In this document: in pieces, positions 117 through 62,037 of the stretch | Layout: each line of letters opens with the position of its first letter | Position numbering within the stretch: the first letter of the stretch is position 1 | NCBI GenBank assembly: GCA_028826165.1 | Contig: JAPDFW010000063.1 | Coordinates: 62,001-126,000 of the forward strand | Direction of reading: 5' to 3' | Source of the DNA: Anaeramoeba ignava BMAN | Taxonomy: Eukaryota; Protista; Anaeramoebae | DNA: 64,000 nucleotides | Translations under genes and position numbers: made by a program | The notes under the pieces: model-generated | The model's input: the letters and a program-made list of their open reading frames with translations, nothing else | Told to the model about the DNA's origin: nothing | Databases searched by the model: none

Positions 117-306
117 AAAAAATACCTTTTTTTTCTTTATTTTTCTTCAATTCATCTTTAATTTTTCATAGAATATTTTCCTCAAAACAAAATGGTTTCT
201 TTCTTTCTTTCCTTCTTTCTGCTTTTTCATTTGATTTTCTTTCAAAAAAAAAACTCACAATAAACTAAAAACAATTTTTTATTTTTCATTTTTTTTCTTT
301 TCAAAA

Positions 307-2146
307 ATGAATGAAATTTATATTTTTTGGTCAAAATCAATTTCCAATTCTTATCAAAAATGAACCTGATAAAATAACAAAACCAATTCAATTTAAATTT
401 GAATTTGAAAATGAAAATGAAAATGAAAATGAAAATGAAAAACAAATTAAACAAATTTCATCAGGAAGATTTTCAACAATTTTTCTTTTTGAAAATGGAA
501 AAGCAATAGAATATTTAACTGAAAAAGATTCAAAACAAAATCCTGAAAAAATCCAAATTGAAAAAAATATTCAAAAAGTAACTGTTGGTGGTGAAAATGA
601 AGCTATTTTAACAAAAGAAGGAAATGTATTTGCAAAAGGAATAGATATTAATCCACAAAATACAAAAGAATTTATCAATATTTCATCATTAATTGAAGAT
701 AAAAATGATAGAATAATTAAAGATATTGTTTCTGGAGCTAGTTCAATTTACTTATTAACTTCAAATCAAAATGCCTATGGAATTGGTTCAAATGGATATG
801 GCCAACTTGGTTTTGATTCTGAAACACTTAAAAAAACAGAAAAACCAATTTTAATAATAAAAAATGTTTCTAAAATATTTTCAGGAAATTCTTCAAAAAA
901 TATTTTTCTTTTAAATTCAAATCAAGAATTATTTGGATGCGGATGGAATCAATTTGGTCAACTTGGATTAGGAGAATCAAAAAGAGAAAAAAGAGAAATT
1001 CAGAAATTAACCCAAATCCAAAATATTCCAAAAAGTAAAATAATTGATATTCAATGTGGATTATTTCATTCAATAATGCTGATCGAAAATGAAAATGAAA
1101 ATCCAAATCCAAAAAGAAAACTTTATTCATGTGGATATTCTCCATATAATGGACTTGGAACAAATACTTATGAATTTACTGAAATCAAATCATCTTTATT
1201 TGAAAATGATGATATTCTTGATTTTTCTGTTGGATTTGGACATACTTTGATTTTAACATCTAATTCAAAATTAATTGGATTTGGAGATAATTCACATGGT
1301 CAATTAGGAACTGGAAATACATCAAGAACTGATTTAATTCCAATTCAAATTGAACTTCCTAAATTAAGATTTAATGAAAATATTTCCAATTATCATATTT
1401 CTTGTGGAAATTATAGATCATTTCTTTATTATTCTCCTTTTTCTCCTTTTTCCAATCTTGAAGAAGATTTGATAAAATTATTTAAAAGAAAAGAATTTTG
1501 TAATATTTCATTTAAAACCAAAAATGGAGAAATAATTGAAGCTCATAAATTAATATTGAAATATAGATTAAATCAAAATCAAAATCAAATTGAAAAACTT
1601 CAAGAAATTATTTCAAAAAAATCAATTAAAGAATCAAATCAAATATTTGAAATGATTTATTCAAACAATTCAAAAATAAATCCAAAATTATATTCTGAAA
1701 TTAAAGAAATTATAAATTCAAATGAAAAAATAGAAGAAACAATGAAAAGAATTTATTTAAATGAAAATGAAAATGAAAAAGATTTTATAATTGAAAGAAA
1801 AGAAAAACAATATAAATTTCCCAAATTAATATTAATAATGAGAAGTGAATTATATCGAGGAATGTTTTTATCTGTAACAAAAGATAAATCAAATAAAGTT
1901 ACAGATTATAGTGAATTAAGTAATAAATCATTTCAAATATTTGAATATTGGATTTATTCAAATCATATTAAAGAAGGAATTCAAATTACACAAGAAATAA
2001 TTGAAGAAATTGAAAGAGGAATTGATTATTTTCAATTAAATCAAACAAATCCAAATTTATTTGATTTATTAATTAAAAATTTAAAAATTAAAATTAAAAT
2101 TAAAATCAAAATTAAAATTAAAATTAAAATTAAAATTAAAAATTAA
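307..2146 (+). CDS. RCC1/BLIP-II beta-propeller + tandem BTB protein, array copy 1
   Basis: RCC1 repeats (GSNGYGQLG, GCGWNQFGQLG, QCGLFHS, VGFGHTLIL, GDNSHGQLG); BTB-like segments (EFCNISF..AHKLIL; KDFII..LIMRSELYRGMFLSV). The ATG homologous to the other copies is at 307, one base out of frame with ORF 311. The C-terminus runs into the (AAAATT)n spacer. Confidence 0.9.
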
Positions 2147-2193
2147 AATTAAAATTCCAAAAATATTTTTTTCATTTTTTTTCATTTTCAAAA

Positions 2194-3969
2194 ATGAATG
2201 ATTGTTTATTTTTTGGTGATAATAAATTTCCAATTCTTATCAAAAATGAACCAGATAGAATAACAAAACCAATTCAATTTAAATTTAAATTTGAATTTGA
2301 AAATGAAAATGAAAAACAAATTAAACAAATTTCATCAGGAAATTATTCAACAATTTTCCTTTTTAAAAATGGAAAAGCAATAGAATATTTAAATAGAAAT
2401 GATTTAAATCAAAAACCTTCAAAAATCCAAATTGAAAATATTCAAAAAGTAACTGTTGGTGGTGAAAATGAAGCTATTTTAACAAAAGAAGGAAATGTAT
2501 TTGCCAAAGGATATGATATTGATTCAAAAAATTCAAAAGAATTTATCAATATTTCATCATTAATTGAAGATAAAAATGATAGAATAATTCGAAGATGTTG
2601 TTTCTGGAGTTCGTTCAATTTATTTATTAACTTCAAATCATAATGCTTATGGAATTGGTTCAAATGAATATAGTCAACTCGGTTTTAATTCTAAAAAACT
2701 TTATAACACAGAAAAACCAATTTTAATGATGAAAAATGTTTCTAAAATATTTTCAGGAATTTGTTCAAAACTTGTTTTTCTTTTAAATTCAAATCAAGAA
2801 TTATTTGGATGCGGCTTAAATGATTATAGTCAAATTGGATTAAGAAAATCAAGAAGAAAAAAAAGAGAAATTCAGAAATTAACCAAAATTAAAAATATTC
2901 CAAAAGGTAAAATAATTGATATTCAATGTGGTGGATTTCATTCAATAATGTCGATTGAAAATGAAAATCAAAATCCAAAAAGAAAACTTTATTCATGTGG
3001 AGATTATATATATAATGGACTTGGCAAAAATGAAGATACCTATAAATTTACTGAAATCAAATCATCTTTATTTGAAAATGATGATAATATTATTGAAATT
3101 TCTGTTGGATATTTCCATACTTTGATTTTAACATCTAAATCAAAATTATTAGTATTTGGAGATAATGCTTATGGTCAATTAGGAACTGGAAATACATCAA
3201 GAACTGATTTAATTCCAATTCAAATTGAACTTCCTAAATTAAGATTTAATGAAGATATTTCCAATTATCATGTTTCTTGTGGAAATTATAGATCATTTCT
3301 TTATTATTCTCCTTTTTCTCCTTTTTCCAATCTTGAAGAAGATTTGATAAAACTATTTAAAAGAAAAGAATTTTGTGATATTTCATTTAAAACCAAAAAT
3401 GGAGAAATAATTGAAGCTCATAAATTAATATTGGAATATAGATTAAAAGATCAAAATGAAATTGAAAAACTTAAAGAAATTATTTCAAAAAAATCAATTA
3501 AAGAATCAAATCAAATATTTGAAATGATTTATTCAAACAGAATAATAAATCCAAAATTATATTCTGAAATTAAAGAAATTATAAATTCCAATGAAAAAAT
3601 TGAAGAAACAATGAAAAGAATTTATTTAAATGAAAATGAAAATGTAAAAAGATTTTATAATTGAAAGAAAAGAAAAACAATATAAATTTCCTAAATTAAT
3701 ATTAATAATGAGAAGTGAATTTATATCGAGGAATGTTTTTATCTGTAACAAAAGATAAATCAAATAAAGTTACAGATTATAGTGAATTAAGTAATAAATC
3801 ATTTCAAATATTTGAATATTGGATTTATTCAAATCAAATTAAAGAAGGAATTGAAATTACACAAGAAATAATTGAAGAAATTGAAAGAGGAATTGATTAT
3901 TTTCAATTAAATCAAACAAATCCAAATTTAATTGATTTATTAATTAACAAATTTAATAATCAAAATTAA
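2194..3969 (+). CDS. RCC1-BTB array copy 2 (apparent frameshifts near 2590, 3650, 3718)
   Basis: Colinear with copy 1 across ORFs 2194-2643, 2726-3664 and 3715-3969. Confidence 0.85.
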
Positions 3970-4063
3970 AATTAAAATTAAAATCAAAATTAAAATTAAA
4001 ATTAAAATTAAAATTAAAATTAAAATTCCAAAAAACGTTTTTTCATTTTTTTTCTTTTTAAAA

Positions 4064-5840
4064 ATGAATGATTGTTTATTTTTTGGTTTAAATCAATTTC
4101 CAATTCTTATCAAAAATGAACCATTTCAATAACAAAGCCAATTAAATTTAAATTTGAAAATGAAAATGAAAATGAAAAACAAATTAAACAAATTTCATCA
4201 GGAAATTATTCAACAATTTTCCTTTTTGAAAATGGAAAAACAATGGAATATTTAAAAGAAAATTATTCAAATCAAAAACCTTCAAAAATCCAAATTGAAG
4301 AAAATATTCAAAAAGTAACTGTTGGTTCTCGAAATGAAGCTATTTTAACAATAGAAGGAAATGTATTTGCCAAAGGAAAAGATATTAATCCAAAAAATCC
4401 AAAAGAATTTATCAATATTTCATCATTAATTGAAGATAAAAATGATAGAATAATTAAAGATATTGTTTCTGGATCTAATTCAATTTACTTATTAACTTCA
4501 AATCAAAATGCTTATGGAATTGGTTCAAATGGATATGGCCAACTTGGTTTTGATTCTGAAACACTTAAAAAAACAGAAAAACCAATTTTAATGATGAAAA
4601 ATGTTTCTAAAATATTTTCAGGAAATTCTTCACTTCGTGTTTTTCTTTTAAATCCAAATCAAGAATTATTTGGATGCGGATGGAATCAATCTGGTCAACT
4701 TGGATTAAGAAAATCAAGAAAAGAAACAAAAATCCATAAATTAACCAAAATCCAAAATATCCCAAAAGGCAAAATAATTGATATTCAATGTGGGCATAGT
4801 CATTCAATAATGCTTATTGAAGAAGATGATGAAAATGAAAATCCAAAAAGAAAACTTTATTCATGTGGAGTTGGTTTTTATAATGGACTTGGCAAAAATA
4901 AAGATACTTATGAATTTACTGAAATCAAATCATCTTTATTTGAAAATGATGATAATATTCTTGATTTTTCTGTTGGATATTCCCATACTTTGATTTTAAC
5001 ATCTAAAGGAAAATTATTAGTATTTGGATATAATTTTTATGGTCAATTAGGAACTGGAAATACAAATGATCAATCAATTCCAATTCAAATTGAACTTCCT
5101 AAATTAAGATTTAATGAAGATATTTCTAATTATCATATTTATTGTGGATATTATAATTCATTTATTTATTATTCTCCTCCTTCCTTTTCCAATCTTGAAG
5201 AGATTTGATAAAACTATTTGAAAGAAAAGAATTTTGTGATATTTCATTTAAAACAGAAAATGGAGAAATAATTGAAGCTCATAAATTAATATTGAAATAT
5301 AGATTAAATCAAAATGAAAATCAAATTGAAAAACTTCAAGAAATTATTTCAAAAAAATCAATTAAAGAATCCAATCAAATATTTGAAATGATTTATTCAA
5401 ACAATTCCAAAATAAATCCAAAATTATATTCTGAAATTAAAGAAATTATAAATTCAAATGAAAAAATTGAAGAAACAATGAAAAGAATTTATTTAAATGA
5501 AAATGAAAATGAAAATGTAAAAGATTTTATAATTGAAAGAAAAGAAAAACAATATAAATTTCCTAAATTAATATTAATAATGAGAAGTGAATTATATCGA
5601 GGAATGTTTTTATCTGTAACAGAAGATAAATCAAATAAAGTTACAGATTATAGTGAATTAAGTAATAAATCATTTCAAATATTTGAATATTGGGTTTATT
5701 CAAATCAAATTAAAGATGAAATTCAAATTACAAAAGAAATAATTAATGAATTAAAAAGAGGAATTGATTATTTTCAATTAAATCAAACAAATCCAAATTT
5801 ATTTGATTTATTAATTAACAAATTTAAAAATCAAAATTAA
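4064..5840 (+). CDS. RCC1-BTB array copy 3 (apparent frameshifts near 4128 and 5200)
   Basis: ATGAATGATTGT start at 4064 as in copies 2, 5 and 6; ORFs 4243-5208 and 5205-5840 are colinear with copy 1. Confidence 0.85.
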
Positions 5841-6270
5841 AATTAAAATTAAAATTAAAATCAAAATCAAAATTAAAATTAAAATTAAAATTAAAATTAA
5901 AATTAAAATTAAAATTAAAATTAAAATTAAAATTAAAATTAAAATTAAAATTAAAATTAAAATCAATAATCAAAATTAAAATTAAAAATTAAAATTAAAA
6001 TTAAAATTAAAATTAAAATTAACATTAAAATTAAAATTAAAATCTTTTTTCATTTTTCAAAATCAAAATTAAAATTAAAATTTTATTTTAAAATTAAAAT
6101 TAATAATCAAAATTAAAATTAAAATCAATAATCAAAATTAAAATTAAAATTAAAAATGAAATTAAAATAAAATAAAAAAATTTTTCCTTTTTAAAAATTA
6201 AATTTGAAATGAAAACTTAAAATGAAAATGAAAATGAAAATGAAAATGAAAATGAAAATGAAAATGAAAA
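5825..6270 (+). repeat. (AAAATT/AAAATC)n hexamer spacer of the RCC1-BTB array; similar tracts at about 2085-2155, 3960-4027, 7900-8154, 9985-10241 and 12080-12153
   Basis: Directly visible hexamer microsatellite between all array copies. Confidence 0.9.
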
Positions 6271-7910
6271 ACAAATTAAACAAATTTCATCAGGAAATTA
6301 TTCAACAATTTTCCTTTTTGAAAATGGGAAAGCAATAGAATATTTAAATAGAAATGATTTAAATCAAAAACCTTCAAAAATCCAAATTGAAAATATTCAA
6401 AAAGTAACTGTTGGTTATTCAAATGAAGCTATTTTAACAAAAGAAGGAAATGTATTTGCCAAAGGAAAAGATATTTATACAAAAAATCCAAAAGAATTTA
6501 TCAATATTTCATCATTAATTAAAGATAAAAATGATAGAATAATTAAAGATATTGTTTCTGGATCTAATTCAATTTACTTATTAACTTCAAATCAAAATGC
6601 TTATGGAATTGGTTCAAATCATAATGGTCAACTTGGTTTTGATTCTGAACCACTTAAAAAAACAGAAAAACCAATTTTAATGATGAAAAATGTTTCTAAA
6701 ATATTTTCAGGAATTTGTTCAATTCATGTTTTTCTTTTAAATTCAAATCAAGAATTATTTGGATGCGGAAATAATGATTATGGTCAACTTGGATTAAGAA
6801 AATCAATAAAAAGAAACAAAAATTGATAAATTAACCAAAATCCAAAATATTCCAAAAGGCAAAATAACTGATATTCAATGTGGAGATTCTTATTCAATAA
6901 TGCTGATTGAAGATGAAAATGAAAATCCAAAAAGAAAACTTTATTCATGTGGATTTACTAAATATAATGGACTTGGCAAAAATAAAGATACTTATAAATT
7001 TACTGAAATCAAATCATCTTTATTTGAAAATAATGATAATATTATTGAAATTTCTGTTGGATATTATCATACTTTGATTTTAACATCTAATTCAAAGATG
7101 ATAGGATTTGGATATAATTACGATGGTGAATTAGGAACTGGAAATACAAAATATCAATTAATTCCTATTCAAATTGAACTTCCTAAATTAAGATTTAATG
7201 AAGATATTTCCAATTATCATATTTATTGTGGATATTACAGATCATTTCTTTATTATTCTCCTTTTTCTTTTTCCAATCTTGAAGAAGATTTGATAAAACT
7301 ATTTAAAAGAAAAGAATTTTGTGATATTTCATTTAAAACAGAAAATGGAGAAATAATTGAAGCTCATAAATTAATATTGGAATATAGATTAAATGAAAAT
7401 CAAATTGAAAAACTTAAAGAAATTATTTCAAAAAAATCAATTAAAGAATCAAATCAAATATTTGAAATGATTTATTCAAACAGAATAATAAATCCAAAAT
7501 TATATTCTGAAATTAAAGAAATTATAAATTCAAATGAAAAAATTGAAGAAACAATGAAAAGAATTTATTTAAATGAAAATGAAAATGTAAAAGATTTTAT
7601 AATTGAAAGAAAAGAAAAACAATATAAATTTCCAAAATTAATATTAATAATGAGAAGTGAATTATATCGAGGAATGTTTTTATCTGTTACAAATGATACT
7701 TCAAATAAAGTTACAGATTATAGTGAATTAAGTAATAAATCATTTCAAATATTTGAATATTGGATTTATTCAAATAAAATTAAAGAAGAAATTCAAATTA
7801 CACAAGAAATAATTAATGAATTAAAAAGAGGAATTGATTATTTCCAATTAAATCAAACAAATCCAAATTTATTTGATTTATTAATTAACAAATTTAATAA
7901 TCAAAATTAA
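6200..7910 (+). CDS. RCC1-BTB array copy 4 (5' start missing or degraded, frameshift near 6810; possibly a pseudogene)
   Basis: Homology resumes at the (GAAAAT)n tract near 6220; the MNDCLFFG..KPI start segment is absent; ORF 6900-7910 covers the last blades and the BTBs. Confidence 0.75.
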
Positions 7911-8189
7911 AATCAAAATCAAAATTAAAATCAAAATTAAAATCAAAATTAAAATCAAAATCAAAATTAAAATTAAAATTAAAATTAAAATCAAAATTTA
8001 AATTAAAATCAAAATCAAAATTTAAATCAAAATCAAAATTAAAATTAAAATTAAAATTAAAATTAAAATTAAAATCAAAATCAAAATTTAAATCAAAATC
8101 AAAATTAAAATTAAAATTAAAATTAAAATTAAAATTAAAATTAAAATTAAAATTCCAAAAATATTTTTTTCATTTTTTTCTTTTTAAAA

Positions 8190-9993
8190 ATGAATGATTG
8201 TTTATTTTTTGGTGATAATAATTATCCAATTCTTATCAAAAATGAACCAGATAAAATAACAAAACCAATTAAATTTAAATTTGAAAATGAAAATGAAAAT
8301 GAAAATGAAAATGAAAAACAAATTAAACAAATTTCAACAAGTTGGATTTCAACAATTTTCCTTTTTGAAAATGGAAAAACAATAGAATATTTAAATAAAA
8401 ATGATTCAAATCAAAATCCTTCAAAAATCCAAATTGAAAATATTCAAAAAGTAACTGTTGGTTATTCAAATGAAGCTATTTTAACAAAAGAAGGAAATGT
8501 ATTTGCCAAAGGAAAAGATATTTATACAAATAATCCAAATGAATTTATCAATATTTCATCATTAATTGAAGATAAAAATGATAGAATAATTAAAGATATT
8601 GTTTCTGGAGCCAATTCAATTTATTTATTAACTTCAAATCAAAATGCTTATGGAATTGGTTCAAATCAATATAGCCAACTTGGTTTTGATTCTGAAACAC
8701 TTCCAAAAACAGAAAAACCAATTTTAATGATGAAAAATGTTTCTAAAATATTTTCAGGAGATACTTCAAGATCTGTTTTTCTTTTAAATTCAAATCAAGA
8801 ATTATTTGGGTGCGGATGGAATCAATCTGGTAAACTTGGATTAGGAAAATCAAGAAGAAAAAAAAGAGAAATTGATAAATTAACCAAAATTAAAAATATT
8901 CCAAAAGGTAAAATAATCGATATTAAATGTGGACATAGTCATTCAATAATGCTGATTGAAGATGAAAATGAAAATCCAAAAAGAAAACTTTATTCATGTG
9001 GAGTTGGGTTTTATAATGGACTTGGCAAAATGCTTGAAAATACTTATGAATTTACTGAAATCAAATCATCTTTATTTGAAAATGATAATATTATTGAAAT
9101 TTCTGTTGGAGAAATTCATACTTTGATTTTAACTTCCAAAGGGAAATTAATTGGATTTGGACATAATTATTATGGTCAATTAGGAACTGGAGATAGAGCA
9201 TTTAAATCAATTCCAATTCAAATTGAACTTCCTAAATTAAGATTTAATGAAGATATTTCTAATTATCATATTTCTTGTGGAAGTAATAGATCATTTCTTT
9301 ATTATTCTCCTCCTTTTTTTTCCAATCTTGAAGAAGATTTGATAAAATTATTTAGAAGAAAAGAATTTTGTAATATTTCATTTAAAACCGAAAATGGAGA
9401 AATAATTGAAGCTCATAAATTAATATTGGAATATAGATTAAATCAAAATGAAATTGAAATTGAAAATCAAAATGAAATTGAAAAACTTAAAGAAATTATT
9501 TCAAAAAAATCAATTAAAGAATCAAATCAAATATTTGAAATGATTTATTCAAACAATTCCAAAATAAATCCAAAATTATATTCTGAAATTAAAGAAATTA
9601 TAAATTCAAATGAAAAAATTGAAGAAACAATGAAAAGAATTTATTTAAATGAAAATGAAAATGAAAATGAAAAAGATTTTATTATTGAAAGAAAAGAAAA
9701 ACAATATAAATTTCCCAAATTAATATTAATAATGAGAAGTGAATTATATCGAGGAATGTTTTTATCTGTAACAAAAGATAAATCAAATAAAGTTACAGAT
9801 TATAGTGAATTAAGTAATAAATCATTTCAAATATTTGAATATTGGATTTATTCAAATCAAATCAAAGATGAAATTCAAATTACACAAGAAATTATTAATG
9901 AATTAAAAAGAGGAATTGATTATTTTCCAATTAAATCAAACAAATCCAAATTTATTTGATTTATTAATTAAAAAATTTAATAATCAAAATTAA
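8190..9993 (+). CDS. RCC1-BTB array copy 5 (one late frameshift near 9927)
   Basis: 589-aa ORF 8190-9959; the homologous stop (NQN*) is at 9991-9993. Confidence 0.9.
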
Positions 9994-10277
9994 AATTAAA
10001 ATCAAAATCAAAATTAAAATCAAAATCAAAATTAAAATCAAAATCAAAATTAAAATTAAAATTAAAATTAAAATTAAAATTAAAATTAAAATTAAAATTA
10101 AAATTTAAAATCAAAAATTAAAATTAAAATCAAAATTAAAATTAAAATTAAAATCAAAATTCAAAATTAAAATTAAAATTAAAATTAAAATTAAAATTAA
10201 AAATTAAAATTAAAATTAAAATTAAAATTAAAATTAAAATTCCAAAAATTATTTTTTTCATTTTTTTCTTTTTAAAA

Positions 10278-12088
10278 ATGAATGATTGTTTATTTTTTGG
10301 TGATAATAATTATCCAATTCTTATCAAAAATGAACCAGATAAAATAACAAAACCAATTAAATTTAAATTTGAAAATGAAAATGAAAATGAAAATGAAAAT
10401 GAAAATGAAAATGAAAATGAAAATGAAAAACAAATTAAACAAATTTCATCAAGTTGGATTTCAACAATTTTCCTTTTTAAAAATGGAAAAACAATAGAAT
10501 ATTTAAGAGATTCAAAACAAAAACCTTCAAAAATCCAAATTGAAAATATTCAAAAAGTAACTGTTGGTTATTCAAACGAAGCTATTTTAACAAAAGAAGG
10601 AAATGTATTTGCCAAAGGAAAAGATATTTATACAAATAATCCAAAAGAATTTATCAATATTTCATCATTAATTGAAGATAAAAATGATAGAATAATTGAA
10701 GATATTGTTTCTGGAGCTTATTCAATTTACTTATTAGCTTCAAATCAAAATGCTTATGGAATTGGTTCAAATTATTCTGGCCAACTTGGTTTTGATTCTG
10801 AAACACTTAAAAAAACAGAAAAACCTATTTTAATAATGAAAAATGTTTCTAAAATATTTTCAGGAAATACTTCAGCTTTTGTTTTTCTTTTAAATTCAAA
10901 TCAAGAATTATTTGGGTGCGGATGGAATCAATCTGGTCAACTTGGATTAAGAAAATCAATAAAAGAAACAGAAATCCATAAATTAACCAAAATCCAAAAT
11001 ATCCCAAAAGGTAAAATAACTGATATTCAATGTGGGCATAGTCATTCAATAATGCTTATTGAAGAAGATGATGAAAATCAAAATCCAAAAAGAAAACTTT
11101 ATTCATGTGGAGTTGGTTTTTATAATGGACTTGGCAAAAATAAAGATACTTATGAATTTACTGAAATTAAATCATCTTTATTTGAAAATGATGATGATAA
11201 TATTCTTGATTTTTCTGTTGGATATTCCCATACTTTGATTTTAACTTCTAATTCAAAACTAATAGTATTTGGATATAATTATTATGGTCAATTAGGAACT
11301 GGAGATACAAATGATCAATCAATTCCAATTCAAATTGAACTTCCTAAATTAAGATTTAATGAAGATATTTCCAATTATCATATTTATTGTGGATATTATA
11401 ATTCATTTATTTATTATTCTCCTCCTTCCTTTTCCAATCTTGAAGAAGATTTGATAAAACTATTTGAAAGAAAAGAATTTTGTGATATTTCATTTAAAAC
11501 CAGAAAATGAAGAAATAATTGAAGCTCATAAATTAATATTGAAATATAGATTAAATCAAAATGAAAATCAAATTGAAAAACTTCAAGAAATTATTTCAAA
11601 AAAATCAATTAAAGAATCAAATCAAATATTTGAAATTATTTATTCAAACAATTCCAAAATAAATCCAAAATTATATTCTGAAATTAAAGAAATTATAAAT
11701 TCAAATGAAAAAATTAGAAGAAACAATGAAAAGAATTTATTTAAATGAAAATGAAAATGAAAATGAAAAAGATTTTATTATTGAAAGAAAAGAAAAACAA
11801 TATAAATTTCCAAAATTAATATTAATAATGAGAAGTGAATTATATCGAGGAATGTTTTTATCTGTAACAAATGATAAATCAAATAAAGTTACAGATTATA
11901 GTGAATTAAGTAATAAATCATTTCAAATATTTGAATATTGGATTTATTCAAATCAAATTAAAAATGAAATTCAAATTACAAAAGAAATAATTGAAGAACT
12001 TAAAATAGGAATTGATTATTTTCAATTAAATCAAACAAATCCAAATTTATTTGATTTATTAATTAAAAAATTTAATAATCAAAATTAA
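10278..12088 (+). CDS. RCC1-BTB array copy 6 (apparent frameshifts near 11500 and 11715)
   Basis: ORFs 10278-11510, 11464-11748 and 11705-12088 are colinear with the other copies. Confidence 0.85.
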
Positions 12089-12153
12089 AATTAAAATCAA
12101 AATTAAAATTAAAAATCAAAATTAAAATCAAAATTAAAATCAAAATTAAAATC

Positions 12154-12219
12154 AAAGAGGAATTGATTATTTTCAATTAAATCAAACATATCCAAATTTA
12201 TTTGATTTATTAATTAAAA
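12154..12219 (+). pseudogene. About 65-nt remnant of an RCC1-BTB 3' end (RGIDYFQLNQTYPNLFDLLIK)
   Basis: Near-identical to the last codons of the array genes; lies after the hexamer spacer. Confidence 0.8.
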
Positions 12220-12250: not shown

Positions 12251-13429
12251 TCAAAAGCATTTTCTATTAATAAAAATAGGACCAAATTCTTCATATTCTT
12301 CTTTTGAAATCCACATATCTTTGAAATTTAAAATGGAGACTAAAATAGATCCTCCAATCCAAGAAGAATATTTTCTTTCAGGAGAAGAAATAATTTTAAT
12401 ATCAGAATCAGAATGATTTAATTTATAAATTTCCTTTTGGATTCTATATTCAATTCCAGGAATCATTGATGAACCTCCTGATAAAATAATATTTTGATAA
12501 AGATCTGTTTTCATTTCATCACTACATTTCATAATTGAATCATAAATCATTTGATGAATTCCTTTTTCTTCTCTTTCAATCAAATGCGGATTAAATAAAG
12601 CTTCACAACATTTAAATCTTTCATTTCCAATTTGGATAATATCTTGTTCAGGTAATTCATAATCTTTTTGAACTGAAGAAATTGATTGTTTTGAAAATTG
12701 CATTTCTTCATCAAAATCATAAGCAACATAACCAAGTTTTTCTTTTATATCATTAACCATTTCAATTTCTCGACTTGTAAAGAATTGATTTCCTTTTTCA
12801 TTGAGCATATTGACTAAATATTCAGTTAGATCTTTTCCTGCCAAATTTTGTTTTATAATTGCATGATTTAAAGCAAACATTTCATAAACAGGAACAACAC
12901 TTGAAAAACCATCTCCAATGTGAACAACAATTCCACTTTTTCTTCCTGATTGATAAAGTGATAAAACTGATTGATTTGCAAGATAAAGAGCTGGAACATC
13001 AAATGTTTCAAACATAATTTGGATTGTTTTTTCTCTGTTCAATTTTGGATTTAAAGGTGGTTCAGTTAATAAAACAGGATGCTCTTCAGGAGCAACTCTT
13101 AATTCATTATAAAAACTATGAAACCATATTTTTTCAATATTGTCCCAATCTGTTATTATTCCATTTTGAACTGGATATCTCATCATTAATATTCCCCTTT
13201 TCTTTTTTGCTTCTTCTCCAATATAAGAATCTCGAATATTCATTCCAACTAAAATTGAATGAGGAGATCTTATCCTTCCTACTATTGTTTCAAATGCTAT
13301 TTTTGGTTCATCTTCTCCTGCAAATCCTACTTTTGTTAAATAAGATCCATTATCAATAATTACTGTTTGAAATGGTTCTTGATTTGAAAAGTTTTCATCA
13401 TTTAATTTTAAAGGAAAATTTATTTCCAT
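12251..13429 (-). CDS. Divergent actin / actin-related protein, intronless
   Basis: IIDNGS..KVGFAGEDEP, YIGEEAKKKRGIL, WDNIEKIWFHSFYNELRVAPEEHPVLLTEPPLNPK, IGNERFKCCEALF, LSGGSSM, PERKYSSWIGGSIL, RKCF end. Confidence 0.95.
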   Translation of the reverse strand: MEINFPLKLNDENFSNQEPFQTVIIDNGSYLTKVGFAGEDEPKIAFETIVGRIRSPHSILVGMNIRDSYIGEEAKKKRGILMMRYPVQNGIITDWDNIEKIWFHSFYNELRVAPEEHPVLLTEPPLNPKLNREKTIQIMFETFDVPALYLANQSVLSLYQSGRKSGIVVHIGDGFSSVVPVYEMFALNHAIIKQNLAGKDLTEYLVNMLNEKGNQFFTSREIEMVNDIKEKLGYVAYDFDEEMQFSKQSISSVQKDYELPEQDIIQIGNERFKCCEALFNPHLIEREEKGIHQMIYDSIMKCSDEMKTDLYQNIILSGGSSMIPGIEYRIQKEIYKLNHSDSDIKIISSPERKYSSWIGGSILVSILNFKDMWISKEEYEEFGPIFINRKCF

Positions 13430-13540: not shown

Positions 13541-16095
13541 ATGTCTTTTAAATTTAATAAACAAATTCAACCAAATTTTCCAAAATCAGAAAATTATAAA
13601 AGTTTACAAGAAACACTTGAAAAAAAATCAAAATTAATTTATCAAAAATTTGAATATGAAAAATTAACAAAACCAAAATATAAAGAATTAATTTTGCGAA
13701 TTGATTCATTATTTCAACCTGAAAAAGAAAAAGAAAATAATAATAAAAAATCAAACAAGAAAAGTAAACATCTTCAAGTTGCAATTCAAAGGTAAATTAA
13801 ATTAAATTAAATTAAATTAAATTAAATTAAATTAAATTAAATTAAATTAAATTAAATTAAATTAAATTAAATTAAATTAAAAAATGTTTTCAATTTAGAT
13901 TTCTTCATAGAATTACAAATTTTGTTCTTATTCCTTTTATTCAAAATAATTTAATGGAAGAATGGTTTAATATCCAAATTAAAGAAGTTTCTGGTTATTT
14001 TGATGATGAAAGAAAATATTCCCATAAAATCCCAAATTTTCTTAGTTTATTAAATACAAGTTCTTGTTATCCAAAATTATGGAATTCAAATCTTATTGAA
14101 GCAGCTGTAAACTTTTTAGAAGATATTTCAACTGAGATTATCAATTTTGGATCTTTTGATTTTGCTAACAAAAAAAAACTAGAAGAATTTCAATATAAAT
14201 TATCAAAAATTTTAATTGGAAAAAAAGAAGAAAAAGAAAAACAATCAAAAATACCAAGTTTAGAAGAAATATCAAGAAAAATTATTGAAAATACTTCATT
14301 TGTGCTTGAAAATGATTTGACAGAAAGCTTACCTATAAATATTATAGAAGATATTTTCGATGATATGAATTTAAATGGAACAATTACTTCTTCAAACATT
14401 TCAAATTTCAAACAAATAGAGGTTTTAGATTTTAAAGGGAATTTTTGGATAAATAATGATATAATTTCGAAAATTATTCATTTTGACAATGTTTTTGAGC
14501 TGAATTTGACAGGGTGTTTGGGATTAAGTGATGAAAGTTTGAAAATTATTTGCGGAAATGAAATGATTCGGAAGAATTTGGAAGTTTTGATTCTTGGAGT
14601 TTGGAGTGGAAAACCAATTCTAAAGCATGAAAATGATTGCAAAGTATGTCTGAGTAATTATATTTCGACATATATTCAAGAACCATCAATTTACCTCAGA
14701 ATATCAGAAGATGCACTTGTAAATTTGAAATATTTGAGAAATTTGATTTATTTGGATATTAGTGGATGTTTTGGAAAAAATAACCCAAATTCTGAATATT
14801 TCCAAGATCAAAATGCTGGAGAAATTTATCAAGAGGAGGTTTTCCAAGAATTCTTGCCTCAATTAAATCAATTACAAACCCTTATTTTGGGAAATGATGG
14901 AGTAACAACATCAATTGTTGAAATGATTCCTTCTTCAATAATCAATTTGAAAATTCGCATTTCTGGAGCACCAAGAATAATTGACAAAGATCATTCGCAA
15001 AATCTTGTTCCTGTTTACTATGAAAATCGCAAAGAAAGTGGGGTTAAAATGGTTTCAGCTTTTGAAAAACTTGTTAATCTTAAAATACTTTCAATTTCAG
15101 AAATGAAACTCTCAATTTATTCCAGAAGATCATTCGATAAACCAGATGAAAATGGATATCTCTTAGATGATAAATTTGCATTATTACTCAAAAAATGGAA
15201 TCAATTAGCTTATTTGAAAATTGAGCCTTTTGATGATCTTGTCCATTTGGAAATGACACGAGATTGGATTCCAAATTTTTCTGAACGGCTTTTAACACTT
15301 GATTTATCAGGAAATAAGTGGATAGCTGATGATACTTTACTTGAAGTTGAAAAAGAATCGAAAGGATTATCAAGATTAGCACTTCTTCGCTCATTAGATT
15401 TATCATGTACATTTGTATCAGATGAAAGTTTATGCAAAATACTTCCGAATCTATTTCAATTAGATTATCTGAATATTCAATCAACAAGAGCTGGAAATGA
15501 GACTATTAAATTCATCAATCAATATTTGCAAAATCTAGAGGTTTTAAAACTTGGAGGAGGGAATTATTCTAATCAAATCACAAATATTACAAATGAAGGA
15601 ATTTATGAATTATTTTTAAATCAAAATATCCAAAAACTGTTTCTTTTATCATTTCCTAATATCACAACATTAACTGAATGTAATTGTTCGAAATCCTATA
15701 AGGAAAATGAATGTATTTTTTCTCTTCCTCTTTGGAAAAATGTTCAAGAATTACATTTGAATGAAATGAGGATTGGAGGCTTATTCAAACATTTAGAATC
15801 AACTAATGATCAAACATTCCTTCAAAGCCTGATTCATTTTGATTGCCAAGCAACTGTTGAATGTGATATTTATGAAGGAAATCATTTTTTTCTCGATAAA
15901 GTTTATTCTGTTTATCTTGAAAATATTAGTTTAAGAATAGTTGATCCTTCTAGATATCAAGTTTCTGGAATTTGTTTGAAAAAATTAAAGAATTTAAAAT
16001 CTTTTATTGCTTCTGAAAATGGAGGAAATGGAGGATTTTCTCCTTTATCTTTTTGTAGTTGTCCTAATCATATTCCTTCACTAAGAGTTTGGTGA
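13541..16095 (+). CDS. Leucine-rich repeat protein (RNI/AMN1/FBXL-like); exons 13541-13791 and 13899-16095
   Basis: LxxLxLxxC repeats (LNLTGCLGLSDESL, LDISGC, LDLSGNKWIAD, LDLSCTFVSDESL); phase-2 GT..AG intron 13792-13898 of pure (AAATT)n joins the two ORFs in frame. Confidence 0.8.
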
Positions 16096-16211: not shown

Positions 16212-19200
16212 TCATTTTGATTTTGATTTTGATTTTGATTTTGATTTTTCTTTTTCTTTCTTTTCTTTTTCTTCTTTTTCTTTTTCTTCAATAAAAAAAA
16301 TCAAATCACCTTTCCAATCAGAAACAACATTATCCAAATTAGTAAGAATTTGATCTCTTTTCGAAAAAAGAAAAGAAATCACAGCATCACGAAGTTTGAC
16401 TACTTGATAAGAAATAGCAAGATCAAACAATTCAAAAGCATTTTGCTGATTCAAAGAATTGACGAGAATTGAAACACAACGCTGCTGGAGTTTAGCAGCA
16501 CTGAAAAGTTGGTAGTATTCATCTGCATCAATTAAATCAACAGCAACATCTTTTTCTGAAATATGGGCAACGGAGTCTGTATAAAGAAAACGAAGAAGTG
16601 ATTCAATTGATTTGACAGTTCTTCCACTAAAATCAGGAGCAGAATTCGAAGAGTCTTCAACAGATTCAAACATATTGCGATAGAGACCACTTCTAGCCGC
16701 GAGAATAAACTTGTGCACAGGCACAGAAACGTTCCCGACAAGGATGATGAAGTCTTTCGACTCGTTATCAAGATATAAACTTTCGAGATCTTGACTAAAA
16801 GCATCGGTAGTTGCGAGGGTTTCCCCAATCTCACGTGAATGGACAATATGCTTGTATCCATGGACACCGAAGATTCTGAGAAGCTCTGCAAGCTGCTGTT
16901 GATGCTCCTCCGCGCGAAGCTCACAGATACCTGAGTAGATAAACTGGAAAAATGAATCCAAAACGGAGGAGTGAAAATGAGACAATCGATTCCTGATTGC
17001 GTCCTCAATTCCCTTGCTGAGCTGCACCACTTTACGGGCAGTTAGATCGACGCTCTGGTTTTCCTCAATGGCAATGCGCGTGTCGGATTCCTGACGGATA
17101 AGCTCGTAGGGTTTTGTAAGGAAACTGAGATCGGGTGTGATCATGCGGATACTGAAGAGTTTCCATAACACACCAAACTCTTTCTTGTTAAGAGAAGTCA
17201 CTTTGAAATCGTAGAATTTTTCCCCTTGATTCGAGAAGGCAAAGTTTTTCAACTCAAAACAGATGCCAGGCTCAAACTCCATGATGTAAACATCATCGTA
17301 AAAAACCTCATTTGATTTTGTTCCCGCAAAAAGAACCAAAAAAGATTCGAATTGCCCAATGAAGAAATCATCCCTACACGAAGGCGGGTCTTGAGATGGG
17401 ATTTTCCGCCATTGATTGGTGATCAAATCACAGGCGAAGACATCATTACTGTTTGTCCTTGAGTCTCTATTCAGTCCTCCAAAAATGACATGCAAGTTAT
17501 TTTGCATGATTGCGCCGTGGCTTTCTATAGGCTTAGTGAATATCGCCCAACGTATTGATTTCTAGCCACTTGTTTGTCCTCAAATCAAAACACCACAAAT
17601 CATTTAAATCTTTAGCTCTTGTTTGACCGCCAAAAATGAACATTTTATCTTGAGAAATGACAGCTGTATGACTTGTTCTTGCTTGAGGCCATGGACTTGA
17701 ATCCTCGCTTGTTATTTCCTTCCATGTCTGTTTTGCGAAGTCGAATATCCACAGATCGTTAAAATATGTCGATCCAAAAAAACGGTATTTCCATCCGGCA
17801 AAAACTACCATTGCATTTTTATAAACAACTGCAGTGTGATAATCTCTTGGTTGCGGTATTTTTATCTGCTCATCCTCGCTGCTCTTCCGATACTCGACCG
17901 CCTGCCATTCTTCGCTTTCTAGATCATAGAAATACATGTCTTCTCGATCTGCAAGTCGTCCACTTTCTTTATTTAAACCCCCATATATATACATACGCCC
18001 TTGAAATAATACCGTCGTATTCCCCCAGCGCGTATTTGGTTGTACCCCAAGTTGTTTTCTTTTTGTCCATTCAAGTGTTTGTAAATTAAGTGTCCACATA
18101 TCATTCCAAAAATCTGGTGCGGATGAGAAAAATCCCCCAAATACCCATAAATTGTTGTTATAAATTACACAAGATGGTTTTGCTCTTCCTCCTGGTGTTT
18201 TTCCTTTAAATTCGATTTTTTGCCACGAATAAAGTTCATGAGCTTTTTATTTATTTAATTTATTTAGAAATTTATTTAGAAATTTATTTATAAATTTATT
18301 TAGAAATTTATTTATAAATTTATTTATAATTTTATTTATAATTTAATTTATAATTTAATTTATAATTTAATTTATAATTTAATTTATAATTTAATTTATA
18401 ATTTTATTTATAATTTTATTTATAAATTTATTTATAATTTTATTTATAATTTAATTTATATTTTTATTTATAATTTAATTTATTATTTTATTTATAATTT
18501 TATTTATAATTTAATTTATAATTTTATTTATAATTTTATTTATAATTTTATTTATAATTTTATTTATAATTTAATTTATAATTTTATTTATAATTTTATT
18601 TATAATTTTATTTATAATTTTATTTATATTTTATTTATAATTTTATTTATATTTTAATTTTAATTTATAATTTTATTTATAATTTGATTTATAATTTTAT
18701 TTATAATTTTTATTTTTAATTTATTTATAATTTTATTTATAATTTTATTTATAATTTATTTATAATTTTTATTTATAATTTAATTTTATAATTTAATTTA
18801 TTTAATTTATAATTTTATTTATAATTTTATTTATAATTTTATTTATAATTTTTTTATTTATAATTTTATTTATAATTTTTATTTATAATTTTATTTATAA
18901 TTTTATTTATAATTTTGTTTTTATTTATAATTTTATTTATAATTTATTTATAATTTATAATTTTATTTTATTTTATTTTTAATTTATATTTTTTATTTTA
19001 TAATTTTATTTATAATTTTATTTATAATTTTTTTATTTATAATTTTATTTATAATTTTATTTTTAATTTTATTTATAATTTAATTTATAATTTTATTTAT
19101 AATTTTATTTATAATTTTATTTATAATTTTATTTATATTTTTATTTATATTTTATTTATAGTTTTTTTTATTTATAATTTTTATTTATAATTTTATTTAT

Positions 19201-21404: not shown

Positions 21405-24400
21405 TTAATATCTTTTTCCAGATTTCAAACGTTGAATCTCAGTTGATAAATTAGAATTTTCACTTAATTGATAATAAGATTCAGCATCAAGTAATTCATT
21501 AATAACGGAATTATCCAAATCATTATCCAATTTATCGAAATATAAATATCTAACTAAAGCATTAACAGTTTTAAATTGTTTTCCACTGTAATCATTAACT
21601 TTATTTGAATCATCATTAACACTTAAAAACATTCCTCGATATAAATCACTTCTTGCCATTAAAATTATCTTGTGAACCTTAATTGGTTTACTTTCTGAAA
21701 TAATTGTAAAATCTTTTGAGTCTTCATTATGATATAAAGCTTCTAAATCATGTTTTAAATTTTCTATTCCATTGATTGAATCAAATTGATTTTGTCCCAT
21801 TTCTCGTATCATTTCTTGTATTGTTCGTAAATGAAATGATACTCCTGTATAAACCCACTCAAAGAAATTGTCCACATCTTCGTGTTTTTTGTAACGGAAA
21901 AATCCATTATATGCTTGAATATCTTTGATTCTTAATCGGAAATTTACAAATTGTGTGTGAATTGGAATTTTCCCTCCTAATGTTGCGATTTCTAAATCAC
22001 AGTTTTCATGTCGAAGATAAAGTTGATCTAGATCTTTTATTAATGATTTTTGTCTAAAAAGGTTCTATTTTTTAATTTATATTTTAATATTAATTTTAAT
22101 ATTAATTTTAATTTTAATTTTAATTTTAATTTTTAATTTTAATTTTTAATTTTAATTTTAATTTTAATTTTAATTTTAATTTTAATTTTAATTTTAATTT
22201 TAATTTTAATTTTAATTTTAATTTCAATTTTTGATTTTTAATTTTAATTTTAATTTTAATTTTAATTTTAATTTTAATTTTAATATTAATTTTAATATTA
22301 ATTTTAATTTTAATATTAATTTTAATTTTAATTTAAATTTTAATATTAATTTTAATTTTAATTTTAATTTTAATTTTGATTTTAATTTTGATTTAAATTT
22401 TAATTTTGATTTTAATTTTAAAATTAATTTTATTTATAATTTAATTTTAATTTTAATTTTGATATAAATTTTAATTTTGATTTTAATTTGTACTGAAATA
22501 TCATATTCAAAAATCTTTTTTGTTGTTGTTCCAAGATATAATCTTTGTTTTGTTGCACCAACTGCCCAAATCTTAACTTCTGCTTCAAATTTATGAAGAC
22601 ATTTTCCAGTCTAATTTTTTTCAAAAATAATAAAAATTAAATATAAAAATTAAATATAAAAATTAAATATAAAAATTAAATATAAAAATTAAATATAAAA
22701 ATTAAATATAAAAATTAAAATGAAATTAAATCAACTTTTAAATCCCAAGCAAATCCAGTTCCACCATCTCCACCAGTAAATAAAATATTATTATAAATAT
22801 GTGAAGAAATAATTGGTTGTTTATGCCCTTCCCATTTTTCTAATTCTTTTCCAGCCTAATAAATTAATATTAATTTTGATTTTAATTTTAATTTTAATTT
22901 TTAATTTTAAATTTAATTTTAAATTTTAATTTTGATTTTGATTTTGATTTTAATTTTAAATTTATTACATTAATATCCCATTTTTTAATTGAACAATCTT
23001 TTGAGCAAGTTATCATTTTTCCTTCATACATTTCAATACACCAAACTCCAAGACTATGACATTTAATTGTTCTATTTAATCTAAGTCCACTCTTTTTAAA
23101 TTTTAAATGAATTTTGAATTTAAATGAATTTTAAATTTAAATCAATTTTAAATTTAAATCAATTTTGAATTTAAATCAATTTTGAATTTAAATCAATTTT
23201 AAATTTTAAATCAATTTTGAATTTAAATCAATTTTAAATTTAAATCAATTTTAAATTTAAATCAATTTTGAATTTAAATCAATTTTGAATTTAAATCAAT
23301 TTTGAATTTAAAATGAATTTTGAATTTAAATCAATTTTGAATTTAAATCAATTTTGAATTTAAATCAATTTTGAATTTAAATCAATTTTAAATTAATACA
23401 TTAAGATTCCATTCTTTCACATTTCCATCAGAAAATCCTGAATAAAGCATATCATTAAAAATTTCTAAAGACCAAACTCTACCTGCATTTTTTTGTTTGC
23501 TAATGTAACTCAATCCATCTTTTTTCTATTTTTTTTTCATAATTTTAATATTGAATTTAATTTTGATTTTGATTTAATTTTGATTTTAATTTTAATTTTG
23601 ATTTTGATTTTGATTTTTTTTAGATTTTGATTTTGATTTTGAGTTTTGATTTTGATTTTGATTTTGATTTTAATTTTAATTTTAAATTGATTTTAAATTT
23701 TCAAAATTAATAACTACAAAATTATATTCTCTAATATAAGTATCCTTTCCTCCAGTATAAAATTTATTATTATGAATAACAAAAGTAAAAATATAACCAT
23801 CCCAATCTCCTTTAAAAGACCAAATCAATTCACCATTCTAAATAAAAAGAAAATCAAAAAAGAAAAAAAATGAATATAATTTTTCCAACTTTTTTTTTAT
23901 GAATTGAATATAATAAAAAAATACTTGTGCATTAAAGCATCTTATATCAGAACCAGAAGAATATAAATCACCAAGATGAGTTTTAAGATAGAAAATATAA
24001 CTAGGGGTTTCTTTTGTCCAAACTTTTATAGAATCCTTTTAATTTATTTAATTTTTATATTAAATTTTATTTAAATTTTATTTGAATTTTATATTTAAAT
24101 TTTATTTAAATTTTATATTTAAATTTTATTTAAATTTTATTTAAATTTTATATTTGAATTTTGATATATTTGAATTTTATATTTAAATTTTATTTAAATT
24201 TTATTTAAATTTTTATTTAAATTTTATTTAAATTTTATTTAAATTTTACATATTTTTTTTAAATTTTAAATTATATTTGAATTTATATTTGAATTTTATT
24301 TTAAATATTTAAATTTTATATTTAAATTTGAATTTTATATTTGAATTATATTTTGAATTATATTTTGAATTTTATTTGAATTTTATATTTAAATTATATT

Positions 24401-39843: not shown

Positions 39844-40416
39844 TTCCACTTTTTATATTTTTAAATAATAAAATATTTAGATCTAAAACAATAAATTATT
39901 ATTTTAATAATAAAATTAAATATTAAATTATATTTTTAAATTAATTTATAAATTAAATATTAAATTAAATCTATTTCCATTTTTTATATTTATATGTTAA
40001 ATATTTAAATAATAAAATATTTAAATCTAAAACATTAAATTATTATTTTAATAATAAAATCAAATATTAAATTATATTTTTGAATTAATTTATAAATTAA
40101 ATATTAAATTAAACCTATTCTTATTTTTTATATTTTTATGTTAAATATTTAAATAATAAAATATTTAAATCTAAAACATTAAATTAATATTTTAAACATA
40201 AAATTAAATACTAAATTATATTTTTAAATTAATTTTTAAATTAAATATTAAATTAAATATATTCTCATTTTTTATATTTATATGTTAAATATTTAAATAA
40301 TAAAATATTTAAATCTAAAACATTAAATTATTATTTTAATAATAAAATTAAATATTAAATTATATTTTTAAATTAATTTATAAATTAAATATTAAATTAA
40401 ATCTATTTCCATTTTT
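39844..40416. repeat. 144-bp tandem repeat, about 4 units (left array)
   Basis: ATCTAAAAC recurs at 39881, 40025, 40169, 40313. Confidence 0.92.
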
Positions 40417-40745
40417 TATTGATTTTGATTATTAAATTTGTTAATTAATAAATCAAATAAATTTGGATTTGTTTGATTTAATTGAAAATAATCAATTCCT
40501 CTTTCAATTTCATTAATGATTTCTTGTGTAATTTCAATTCCATCTTTAATTTGATTTGAATAAATCCAATATTCAAATATTTGAAATGATTTATTACTTA
40601 ATTCACTATAGTCTGTAACTTTATTAGAAGTATCATTTGTAACAGATAAAAACATTCCTCGATATAATTCACTTCTCATTATTAATATTAATTTAGGAAA
40701 TTTATATTGTTTTTCTTTTCTTTCAATTATAAAATCTTTTTCATT
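40416..40745 (-). pseudogene. Isolated 3' fragment (second BTB) of an RCC1-BTB array-type gene
   Basis: NEKDFIIERKEKQYKFPKLILIMRSELYRGMFLSVTNDTSNKV..NKFNNQNQ* is near-identical to the array C-terminus; no upstream homology. Confidence 0.9.
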
Positions 40746-40892
40746 AATTTATTTCAAAAATGGAATAAAGAATATTAAATAATTAAATTTAAAATTAATT
40801 CTATTTTTTATATTTTATTAACATTTCTTTATTTAAAATAATATAAAATTATTCCCAATAATTTTAATAAAAATTTTAATTAAAGAAAATTG

Positions 40893-41392
40893 AAATATTT
40901 TAATAAATATAAATATTTAATTTTAATAATATTTAATAATAATTTAATTTAAATTTATTTTATTTTAATTTGATATAATATTTTTATTTATTATATTAAT
41001 ATTTTTAATTATTTATTATTTAATAATTTTTAATTATAATAAAATATATTAAAAAGTGGAATAAATATTTTAATAAAGATATTTATTTAATTTTAATAAT
41101 ATTTAACAATAATTTAATTTAAATTTATTTTATTTTTAATTTTAATATAATATTTTTATTTATTAAATTAATATTTTTAATTATTTATTATTCCAACTTT
41201 AATTATAATAAAATATATTAAAAAGTGGAATAAATATTTTAATAAACATAAATATTTAATTTTAATAATATTTAATAATAATTTAATTTAAATTTGTTTT
41301 AATTTAATTTGATTTAATATTTTTATTTATTAAATTAATATTTTTGATTATTTATTATTTTAATTTTAATTATAATAAAATATATTAAAAAA
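40893..41392. repeat. About 169-170-bp tandem repeat, about 3 units
   Basis: AAATATTTTAATAAA starts at 40893, 41063, 41232; AAAAGTGGAATAAA recurs 169 bp apart (GTGGA at 41056, 41225). Confidence 0.8.
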
Positions 41393-41864
41393 TAAAATTA
41401 AAAAATTAAAAAATTTTAAATAAATTGAATTTAACATGATTGAATAAGATAAACTTTCTAAAAAAATAATTTACTAATTATTCTATTTTTTGATTTTGAT
41501 TATAATTTATTAATATTTAAATATTAATTAATAATAAATTTTATTTGATTTTTTTTATTTTAATATTTTAATTAATGAATTTAAATTTAATTATTATTAA
41601 TTTCTATTTTCAATTTTTATTTTTATTTATTATATTAAAAATATTCAATTTTTTAAAATTTATTATTTTTTTTTTTTGGATTATTTTTTATTAATTAAAT
41701 TTTTAATAAATATTTTAAATTAAAATTAAATTATTTAAAATTAAATTTGTTTCTTATTTATTATTTTAAAGAAATTAATTTGATTAAAAGTAAATTAAAA
41801 TTGAATTAAATTTTGAAAAAAAAATTAAAAAAAAAAGTTTGATTTTCTTATTATTAATTAATTT

Positions 41865-61915: not shown

Positions 61916-62037
61916 ATAATTATTTTTTTCTCCTTTTAAATCTTTTTTTTTTTTTCTCCTTTTCTTGTTTTTATTTAAATTTTTTTTTAATTTTCATTTT
62001 TTTTTTTTCATTATTTTTGTATATTGAAAACTTAATA

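Follow-up and report, generated by a model that had tools for sequence, protein, structure and literature searches.

Tandem RCC1-BTB genes of Anaeramoeba ignava with a variable propeller face on a conserved scaffold

A 64,000-nucleotide stretch of contig JAPDFW010000063.1 of Anaeramoeba ignava BMAN (positions 62,001 to 126,000; hereafter the window) carries near its start a head-to-tail set of six genes of about 2 kb, located at 307-12088 by self-comparison and alignment. Each gene encodes an RCC1 propeller followed by tandem BTB domains. Why do copies of one gene keep a common scaffold and differ in short loops? The original prediction had described six nearly identical copies of near 2 kb with loop differences and had quoted nine sets of loop motifs; the array was found, and all nine sets were correct once the reading frames were followed. 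At each frameshift the frame was carried on and the broken codon masked, solely to compare the copies. The mean column identity of the six-copy alignment was 91%. The scaffold is indeed constant, but "nearly identical" was too strong, as identity outside the loops was about 90-94%.

The explanation that we favour, and hold to be slightly better than even, is that these genes belong to a germline-encoded repertoire of intracellular substrate receptors, probably feeding a Cul3 ubiquitin ligase. The very large, diversified binder family itself is real and is undescribed in the papers searched. In the literature searched, Anaeramoeba was never named together with RCC1 or BTB; RCC1, BTB, cullin and ubiquitin are all absent from the main text of the A. 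ignava genome paper, and the main text of the A. pumila preprint does not discuss RCC1 or BTB.

A BTB 27-mer had 1,233 matches in the A. ignava assembly (42.8 Mb, 147 contigs) and a propeller 29-mer had 1,004, while reversed controls had none. Since 15,022 proteins were predicted from the genome (PMC11550330), the family makes up about 7-8% of the A. ignava genes, and the window array represents six of more than 1,000 copies. Family genes are intronless and encode ~590 amino acids each. The best 120 homologues were all from A. ignava, with identities mostly of 81-85%, and nearly all were singletons at 90% clustering. More divergent RCC1-BTB relatives in A. ignava had identities of 34-58%, some of them fused to ARM or TLDc domains, and two of these divergent relatives were present in the EukProt transcriptome. 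Members with N-terminal ARM repeats or a C-terminal Rho-like GTPase were P0121, P0123, P0125, P0130 and P0102, and a TLDc fusion was seen in another member elsewhere (P0124). A comparable expansion in A. flamelloides was ruled out, as its 120 best matches included no more than about seven RCC1-BTB clusters (identity about 27%); the expansion therefore seems confined to A. ignava.

One face of the propeller

Variation was mapped on an alignment of 117 paralogs, a sample skewed to the closest matches plus cluster representatives, with hypervariable positions defined by an entropy of at least 2 bits. There were 38 such positions, at which mean pairwise identity was about 20% compared with 88% elsewhere. 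All 117 paralogs had a unique hypervariable haplotype, partly by construction because of this sampling. Within the six-copy array, amino acid identity dropped to 0.30 at 36 hypervariable positions, while the remaining propeller residues reached 0.90 and the BTB tail 0.94. The hypervariable positions of copy 1 are residues 8, 10, 11, 20, 21, 53, 94, 95, 111, 143, 144, 162, 163, 174, 194, 196, 212, 214, 215, 228, 229, 251, 252, 276-278, 309, 310, 326, 328, 329, 338, 340, 342, 367 and 368.

Pfam RCC1 and RCC1_2 matched above the cut-off, with BTB in two stretches. The AF2 (AlphaFold) model had seven four-stranded blades, with a model confidence (pLDDT) mostly above 85 and weaker loops in the first blade, and the top Foldseek matches of the propeller model were RPGR, RCC1, HERC2 and UVR8 (E about 1e-24). 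By Pfam, the AF2 model and Foldseek alike, the propeller is a member of the RCC1-like domain (RLD) superfamily.

The A-B and C-D connections of a four-stranded blade share one face, and positions were assigned to this face from DSSP strand order and blade topology. Thirteen hypervariable sites were in A-B turns and 21 in C-D loops; the other four, classed with D strands and D-A links, are positions at the start of strand D. The one face, comprising 114 positions, held 34 of the 38 sites, and none was found among 26 positions of B-C turns, 125 of core strands or 210 of the tail. The variable sites lie on one propeller face, as predicted, and the scatter over the structure that had been set beforehand as refuting was not seen. 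Among the hypervariable positions, 251-252 and 309-310 correspond in the alignment to the Trp-Arg of the G-W-R-H turns of UVR8; these turns form the interaction face of that protein.

The loop changes had been expected to be rich in Tyr, Ser, Gly, Asn and Phe. Tyr was strongly represented at the variable sites (18.7% vs 3.7%), but Ser, Asn and Phe were barely enriched and Gly was depleted, while the enrichment of Trp, Asp and Arg had been missed. Drift towards A+T was ruled out as the source of this composition: Ile (1.8%) and Leu (3.8%) were far below the 16-24% and 13% given by such drift, and Tyr, Asp, Glu and Trp were in excess of it. The description "antibody-like" holds for the surface chemistry, but the variants are encoded in the germline as separate genes, and nothing points to a somatic or reverse transcriptase (RT)-driven process. 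Diversity-generating retroelements (DGRs) and antibody or variable lymphocyte receptor (VLR) systems likewise display a Tyr-rich variable surface on a constant scaffold, whereas the diversity of this family is fixed in separate germline genes with no template repeat or linked RT.

Selection and probable exchange among copies

At the DNA level 59 copies were analysed overall. Site models were applied to 44 codon-aligned copies, and a mixture allowing omega (dN/dS) above 1 was compared with a null at multi-nucleotide rates from 0 to 0.5. Twice the log-likelihood gain was 1060, 753, 452 and 229 as this rate rose. At the strictest multi-hit setting, all 25 selected sites were on the A-B/C-D face, which comprises 92 of the 487 codons. 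These data support positive selection on the variable face, also with multi-nucleotide changes allowed, and the prediction of dN/dS above 1 at the variable sites was thereby borne out. Class-wise rates (omega, synonymous rates and base pattern) were computed without the 3' part of copy 4. Omega was 0.19 for the tail, 0.48 for the core strands and 0.48 for the B-C turns, and the non-synonymous rate at variable sites was about 3-7 fold above the synonymous rate of the gene. With the caveat of recombination, a positively selected binding domain on a tail under purifying selection is the pattern of adaptor repertoires. The changes in the loops were also multi-nucleotide and non-synonymous as described: in the six copies about half of the differing codons at the variable sites differed at two or three bases, and at least 95% of these codon differences were non-synonymous.

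One-face variability and dN/dS above 1 at the variable sites agree with a diversified binding repertoire on a constant scaffold. They also bear on the idea that selfish or neutral amplification (genomic drift) multiplied one gene whose loops are merely unconstrained. The expansion is huge, recent and species-specific, solo fragments are present, and 10 of 48 other full-length copies are broken (38 are intact, in a sample skewed to good matches), all of which would suit drift. But the B-C turns of the opposite face, which are equally exposed, are conserved; the excess of non-synonymous change and the residue composition do not fit; and the copies showed no transposase, terminal repeats or poly-A tail. 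We regard drift as quite improbable and already largely refuted.

The six window copies formed a clade with 98% ultrafast bootstrap (UFBoot) support, and neighbours in other arrays clustered too, so arrays grow locally. Sister copies differed at 52% of the variable codons and at 10% of codons elsewhere, and about 47% of the differing variable codons between sisters had two or three bases changed. Identity between sisters came in patches that follow the loops (0.68 inside a loop, 0.52 from loop to loop). The 39 dimorphic framework sites were in linkage equilibrium beyond ~10 residues (r2 0.005-0.011, expectation 0.009). All four gametes were seen for every pair of markers more than three residues apart, while adjacent multi-base markers were fully linked. 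Both states of multi-base markers found genome-wide were present within the window clade, and markers of this kind were combined in mixed ways there as well as in other arrays. Because framework markers are unlinked and mixed within clades, the sequences point to frequent short-tract exchange among copies across the family. A GENECONV-style longest-run test on the six copies (copy 4 truncated) gave nothing significant after correction.

Copy number would increase as genes are duplicated in tandem within arrays, gene conversion over short tracts, drawing on the more than 1,000 copies, may keep the scaffold uniform and reshuffle loop variants, and diversifying selection would keep the binding face of each copy distinct. 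A similar process is known for the WD40 repeats of Podospora HNWD genes (het-d/het-e), in which a few residues per repeat are positively selected, with concerted evolution and exchange within and between loci (PMC1805685). HNWD and, as it seems, the A. ignava family have in common a beta-propeller recognition surface diversified by exchange. HNWD differs in having 10 genes, near-identical internal repeats, a NACHT domain and a cell-death effector; a gene of the A. ignava family has blades unlike one another, the units between which exchange takes place are entire genes, and no NACHT or death domain was found (Pfam gave RCC1 and BTB only).

Could a dedicated machinery, by patch mutagenesis or templated editing, direct variation to the loops beyond what selection does? 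Several signs are in its favour. Under the single-hit model the synonymous rate at variable codons was raised about fourfold (8.2 vs about 2, range 2.0-2.6). Gly codons that immediately precede variable sites had raised diversity at the third base, which fell off with distance (rho -0.33, p 0.03). The share of multi-base changes between sisters is high, and the three in-frame stops among the 48 other copies were all at hypervariable codons, about 94 and 174 (L001:7436, L009:8309, L011:3691). But with multi-hit changes allowed the synonymous excess fell to 2.8 vs 2.0, the near/far comparison of synonymous diversity was not significant (p 0.28), and hitchhiking of imported patches accounts for the same data. 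T, G and C are all found as the commonest base of variable columns, and third positions vary (diversity 0.33). No template repeat and no adenine-specific changes were found at the variable sites, and no RT was found in the window (17 RVT_1 matches lie elsewhere in the genome). A DGR is ruled out because the base pattern is not adenine-specific and there is no linked RT, and we give site-directed diversification in general little chance.

The BTB tail and a possible ubiquitin link

The second BTB had its best matches in KBTBD4 (E 9e-11) and SPOP (2e-9), and the first BTB is degenerate. This layout of an RLD and two BTB domains is that of RCBTB1/2-type adaptors; human RCBTB1 (RLD and two BTB domains) is a CUL3 substrate adaptor (PMC4974088). 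RCBTB1/RCBTB2 (CLLD7/CHC1L) and IBTK share with the family an RCC1-like propeller followed by two BTB domains, and the ESM Atlas neighbours of the family include RCBTB1 clusters at 0.94. In contrast, identity to RCBTB1/2 is only about 20%, animals have one or two conserved genes rather than more than 1,000, no hypervariable face has been described for them, and the animal C-terminal helical region after the BTB is much longer.

A. ignava has about eight to nine cullin loci. The spliced cullin genes were searched by single open frames, unjoined, and five were compared with solved structures: one best matched CUL3, three CUL4 and one CUL2. The Cul3-like gene, on contig C58, scored 428 bits to CUL3 vs 363 to CUL4B, over exons other than those for its N-terminal BTB-binding helices. 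Of the cullin set on contigs C64, C109, C71, C74 and C57, three or more genes are Cul4-like; the set also has a near-duplicate (L021/L025) and, on C57, two genes in tandem.

In the explanation that we favour, the A-B turns and C-D loops of the seven-bladed propeller would form one variable, Tyr-rich binding face, and the constant tandem-BTB tail would most likely dock the sole Cul3-like cullin found, so that bound proteins would be ubiquitylated. The likeliest targets would be foreign proteins, such as bacterial effectors or symbiont, viral and mobile-element proteins. The expression, the Cul3 docking and the targets of the family are what we infer here; coupling of the tail to Cul3 is suggested by the RCBTB1-like architecture and by the conservation of the tail.

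The phi-x-E motif and the 3-box are determinants of Cul3 binding, and SPOP needs its BACK/3-box for tight binding (PMC3616122). Several observations weigh against the favoured explanation. The Cul3-binding loop reads V-T-[E/N/K/D]-D with an invariant Asp, and V-T-[END]-D in all but one of the 117 paralogs; when it is aligned in register with KBTBD4 and KLHL3, Thr takes the place of the hydrophobic residue and the invariant Asp that of the Glu. No Pfam BACK match was obtained, the protein ends ~12 residues past the BTB helix 5 region, a single short helix comes after the second BTB, and the tail models had pLDDT below 50. Omega for the whole class of A-B turns plus first C-D residues was only 1.0-1.2 under the single-hit model, and the site-model tests are inflated by recombination. 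No EukProt transcript was found among the core-family matches checked. Read with a shift of one, phi-x-E is V-T-E in about two thirds of copies. Another BTB of the window (21405-21875, -) has an F-L-S-V-x-D-x-S-N loop as in the family, and BTB proteins of Anaeramoeba seem to share the non-canonical Cul3 loop as a rule.

The same selected repertoire of binders might also act without Cul3, the tail serving to dimerise or scaffold while the propellers sequester their targets or control small GTPases at the membranes of symbiosomes or phagosomes. A non-canonical phi-x-E and the apparent lack of a 3-box would fit this, and so would the polybasic CaaX C-terminus of 11 of the 117 paralogs (about 9%; e.g. 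P0021, P0023, P0027, L006, L013, L016, L017), the fusion of one member (P0102) to a Rho-like GTPase, and the expanded Rab and TBC families of Anaeramoeba. On the other hand, the BTB is closest to Cul3 adaptors and strongly conserved, about 90% of copies lack a CaaX end, and a guanine nucleotide exchange factor (GEF) acting on host GTPases would be expected to stay conserved rather than be hypervariable. We hold this alternative to be rather unlikely, though with a real share of probability. A CaaX end was looked for in the window copies, and none of the six has one; in the L004 copy (start 7617) CaaX-coding DNA lies behind a stop codon.

How far the favoured explanation makes the family new can be judged from other adaptor repertoires. 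Passages in PMC4334554 (citing Thomas 2006) and PMC8665587 describe nematode and plant genes of the F-box or MATH-BTB type as hundreds to about 1,400 tandemly duplicated adaptors, with positive selection in the substrate-binding and not in the cullin-binding domain, which are proposed to degrade foreign proteins. The family resembles them in its large, tandem, lineage-specific expansion and in selection on the binding domain. It differs in the RCC1 propeller fold, in its unicellular metamonad host and in a far more uniform scaffold (87-94% identity vs about 19% at variable sites) in linkage equilibrium. The claim of a new system was therefore overstated, as nematodes and plants are already known to have cullin-adaptor repertoires under positive selection. 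By analogy, the family may work like F-box and MATH-BTB repertoires and diversify like HNWD, with an RCBTB-type architecture.

A stronger proposal is that about 8% of the genes form an expressed, antibody-like cytosolic surveillance library, in which micro-conversion all over the genome, possibly with site-directed mutagenesis, keeps recombining at least 12 loop cassettes on a single scaffold, and symbiont or pathogen proteins are sent to Cul3-dependent degradation as an anticipatory immunity. We find this unlikely. If the favoured explanation is true, ubiquitin-based recognition of foreign proteins, as proposed for nematode and plant adaptors but hard to test there, would reach a deep-branching, symbiont-bearing protist. 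One scaffold with more than 1,000 naturally selected binding faces would allow a systematic search for targets and a direct measure of conversion-driven diversification. The family would also be a natural library of single-chain, disulfide-free propeller binders joined to a likely degradation module.

The array, its assembly and its neighbours

Copy 1 (307..2146, +) has a +1 frameshift near 320, rescued by an in-frame ATG at 311, and a -1 frameshift near 2079, after which the reading frame enters the spacer repeat. Its seven-bladed RCC1-like propeller (residues 1-375) is encoded at 311..1435 (+), and its near-constant tail, with a degenerate BTB-like unit and then a second, SPOP/KBTBD-like BTB, at 1436..2080 (+). 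Copy 2 (2194..3969, +) has frameshifts near 2591, 3645 and 3720, and copy 3 (4064..5840, +) near 4123 and 5201. Copy 4 (6221..7910, +) has one near 6808, and its first ~26 codons are absent or garbled in low-complexity DNA. Copy 5 (8190..9993, +) is open for 589 amino acids, with a +1 near 9927 within the last BTB helix, and is also a public-database protein entry (P0112), one of the 120 best homologues. Copy 6 (10278..12088, +) has frameshifts near 11502 and 11716. The first ~26 codons are gone from other copies too (L007:4701; L016:42), with the break at a Glu-Asn repeat, which represents either a recurrent deletion or a recurrent assembly failure.

The one to three assembly frameshifts in each of the six copies had been overlooked by the earlier reading. 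At four breaks the inserted dinucleotide consists of both family alleles side by side: CG (C/G), CA (C/A), TA (T/A) and TC (T/C). A fifth break fuses two longer family variants, the CG case was seen again on another contig, and the remaining breaks are mostly homopolymer slips. The assembly was made from R9 nanopore reads polished with Racon, Nanopolish and Pilon (PMC11550330). Because two alleles are merged, slips are at homopolymers and the reads are R9 nanopore, most breaks are probably mistakes of the consensus where copies or haplotypes were collapsed; real pseudogenes may be among the copies. Could nanopore errors and mis-polishing across paralogs have created the variation and the mosaic pattern as well? 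Such a process accounts for the frameshifts and could have lowered linkage in the tail further, but it does not explain the loop diversity: erroneous bases would not preserve the frame, change amino acids and keep to a single face throughout 117 proteins, and the arrays keep a local phylogenetic signal. We consider an artefact of this kind very improbable indeed.

A conserved pyrimidine-rich leader at 286..306 (+) has a TCA-T element 15-20 nt 5' of the ATG; the same leader recurs at 2172, 4043, 8170 and 10258 and is thus kept in five of the six copies. It may be similar to the parabasalid initiator. A hexamer-repeat spacer (no strand) separates the copies at 2084..2193, and again at 3949-4027, 5827-6270, 7890-8154, 9973-10241 and 12068-12156. 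The array is closed by a 72-bp duplicate of the 3' end of the gene (12148..12219, +), a likely remnant of unequal crossing-over. A solo family fragment, containing only the second BTB and 94% identical, lies at 40410..40745 (-), downstream of a BTB-TLDc gene (40410-43607, -).

Right after the array, and convergent with it, is a divergent actin-family gene (Pfam Actin, E 2e-123) at 12251-13429 (-), and a leucine-rich-repeat gene follows at 13954-16095 (+). A Kelch-BTB gene in two frames at 16212-18099 (-) has 33-41% G+C, far more than the 10-20% around it, and may have been acquired recently or be expressed at a high level. At 59678-61483 (+) lies a PPPDE deubiquitinase/desumoylase-like gene (Peptidase_C97).

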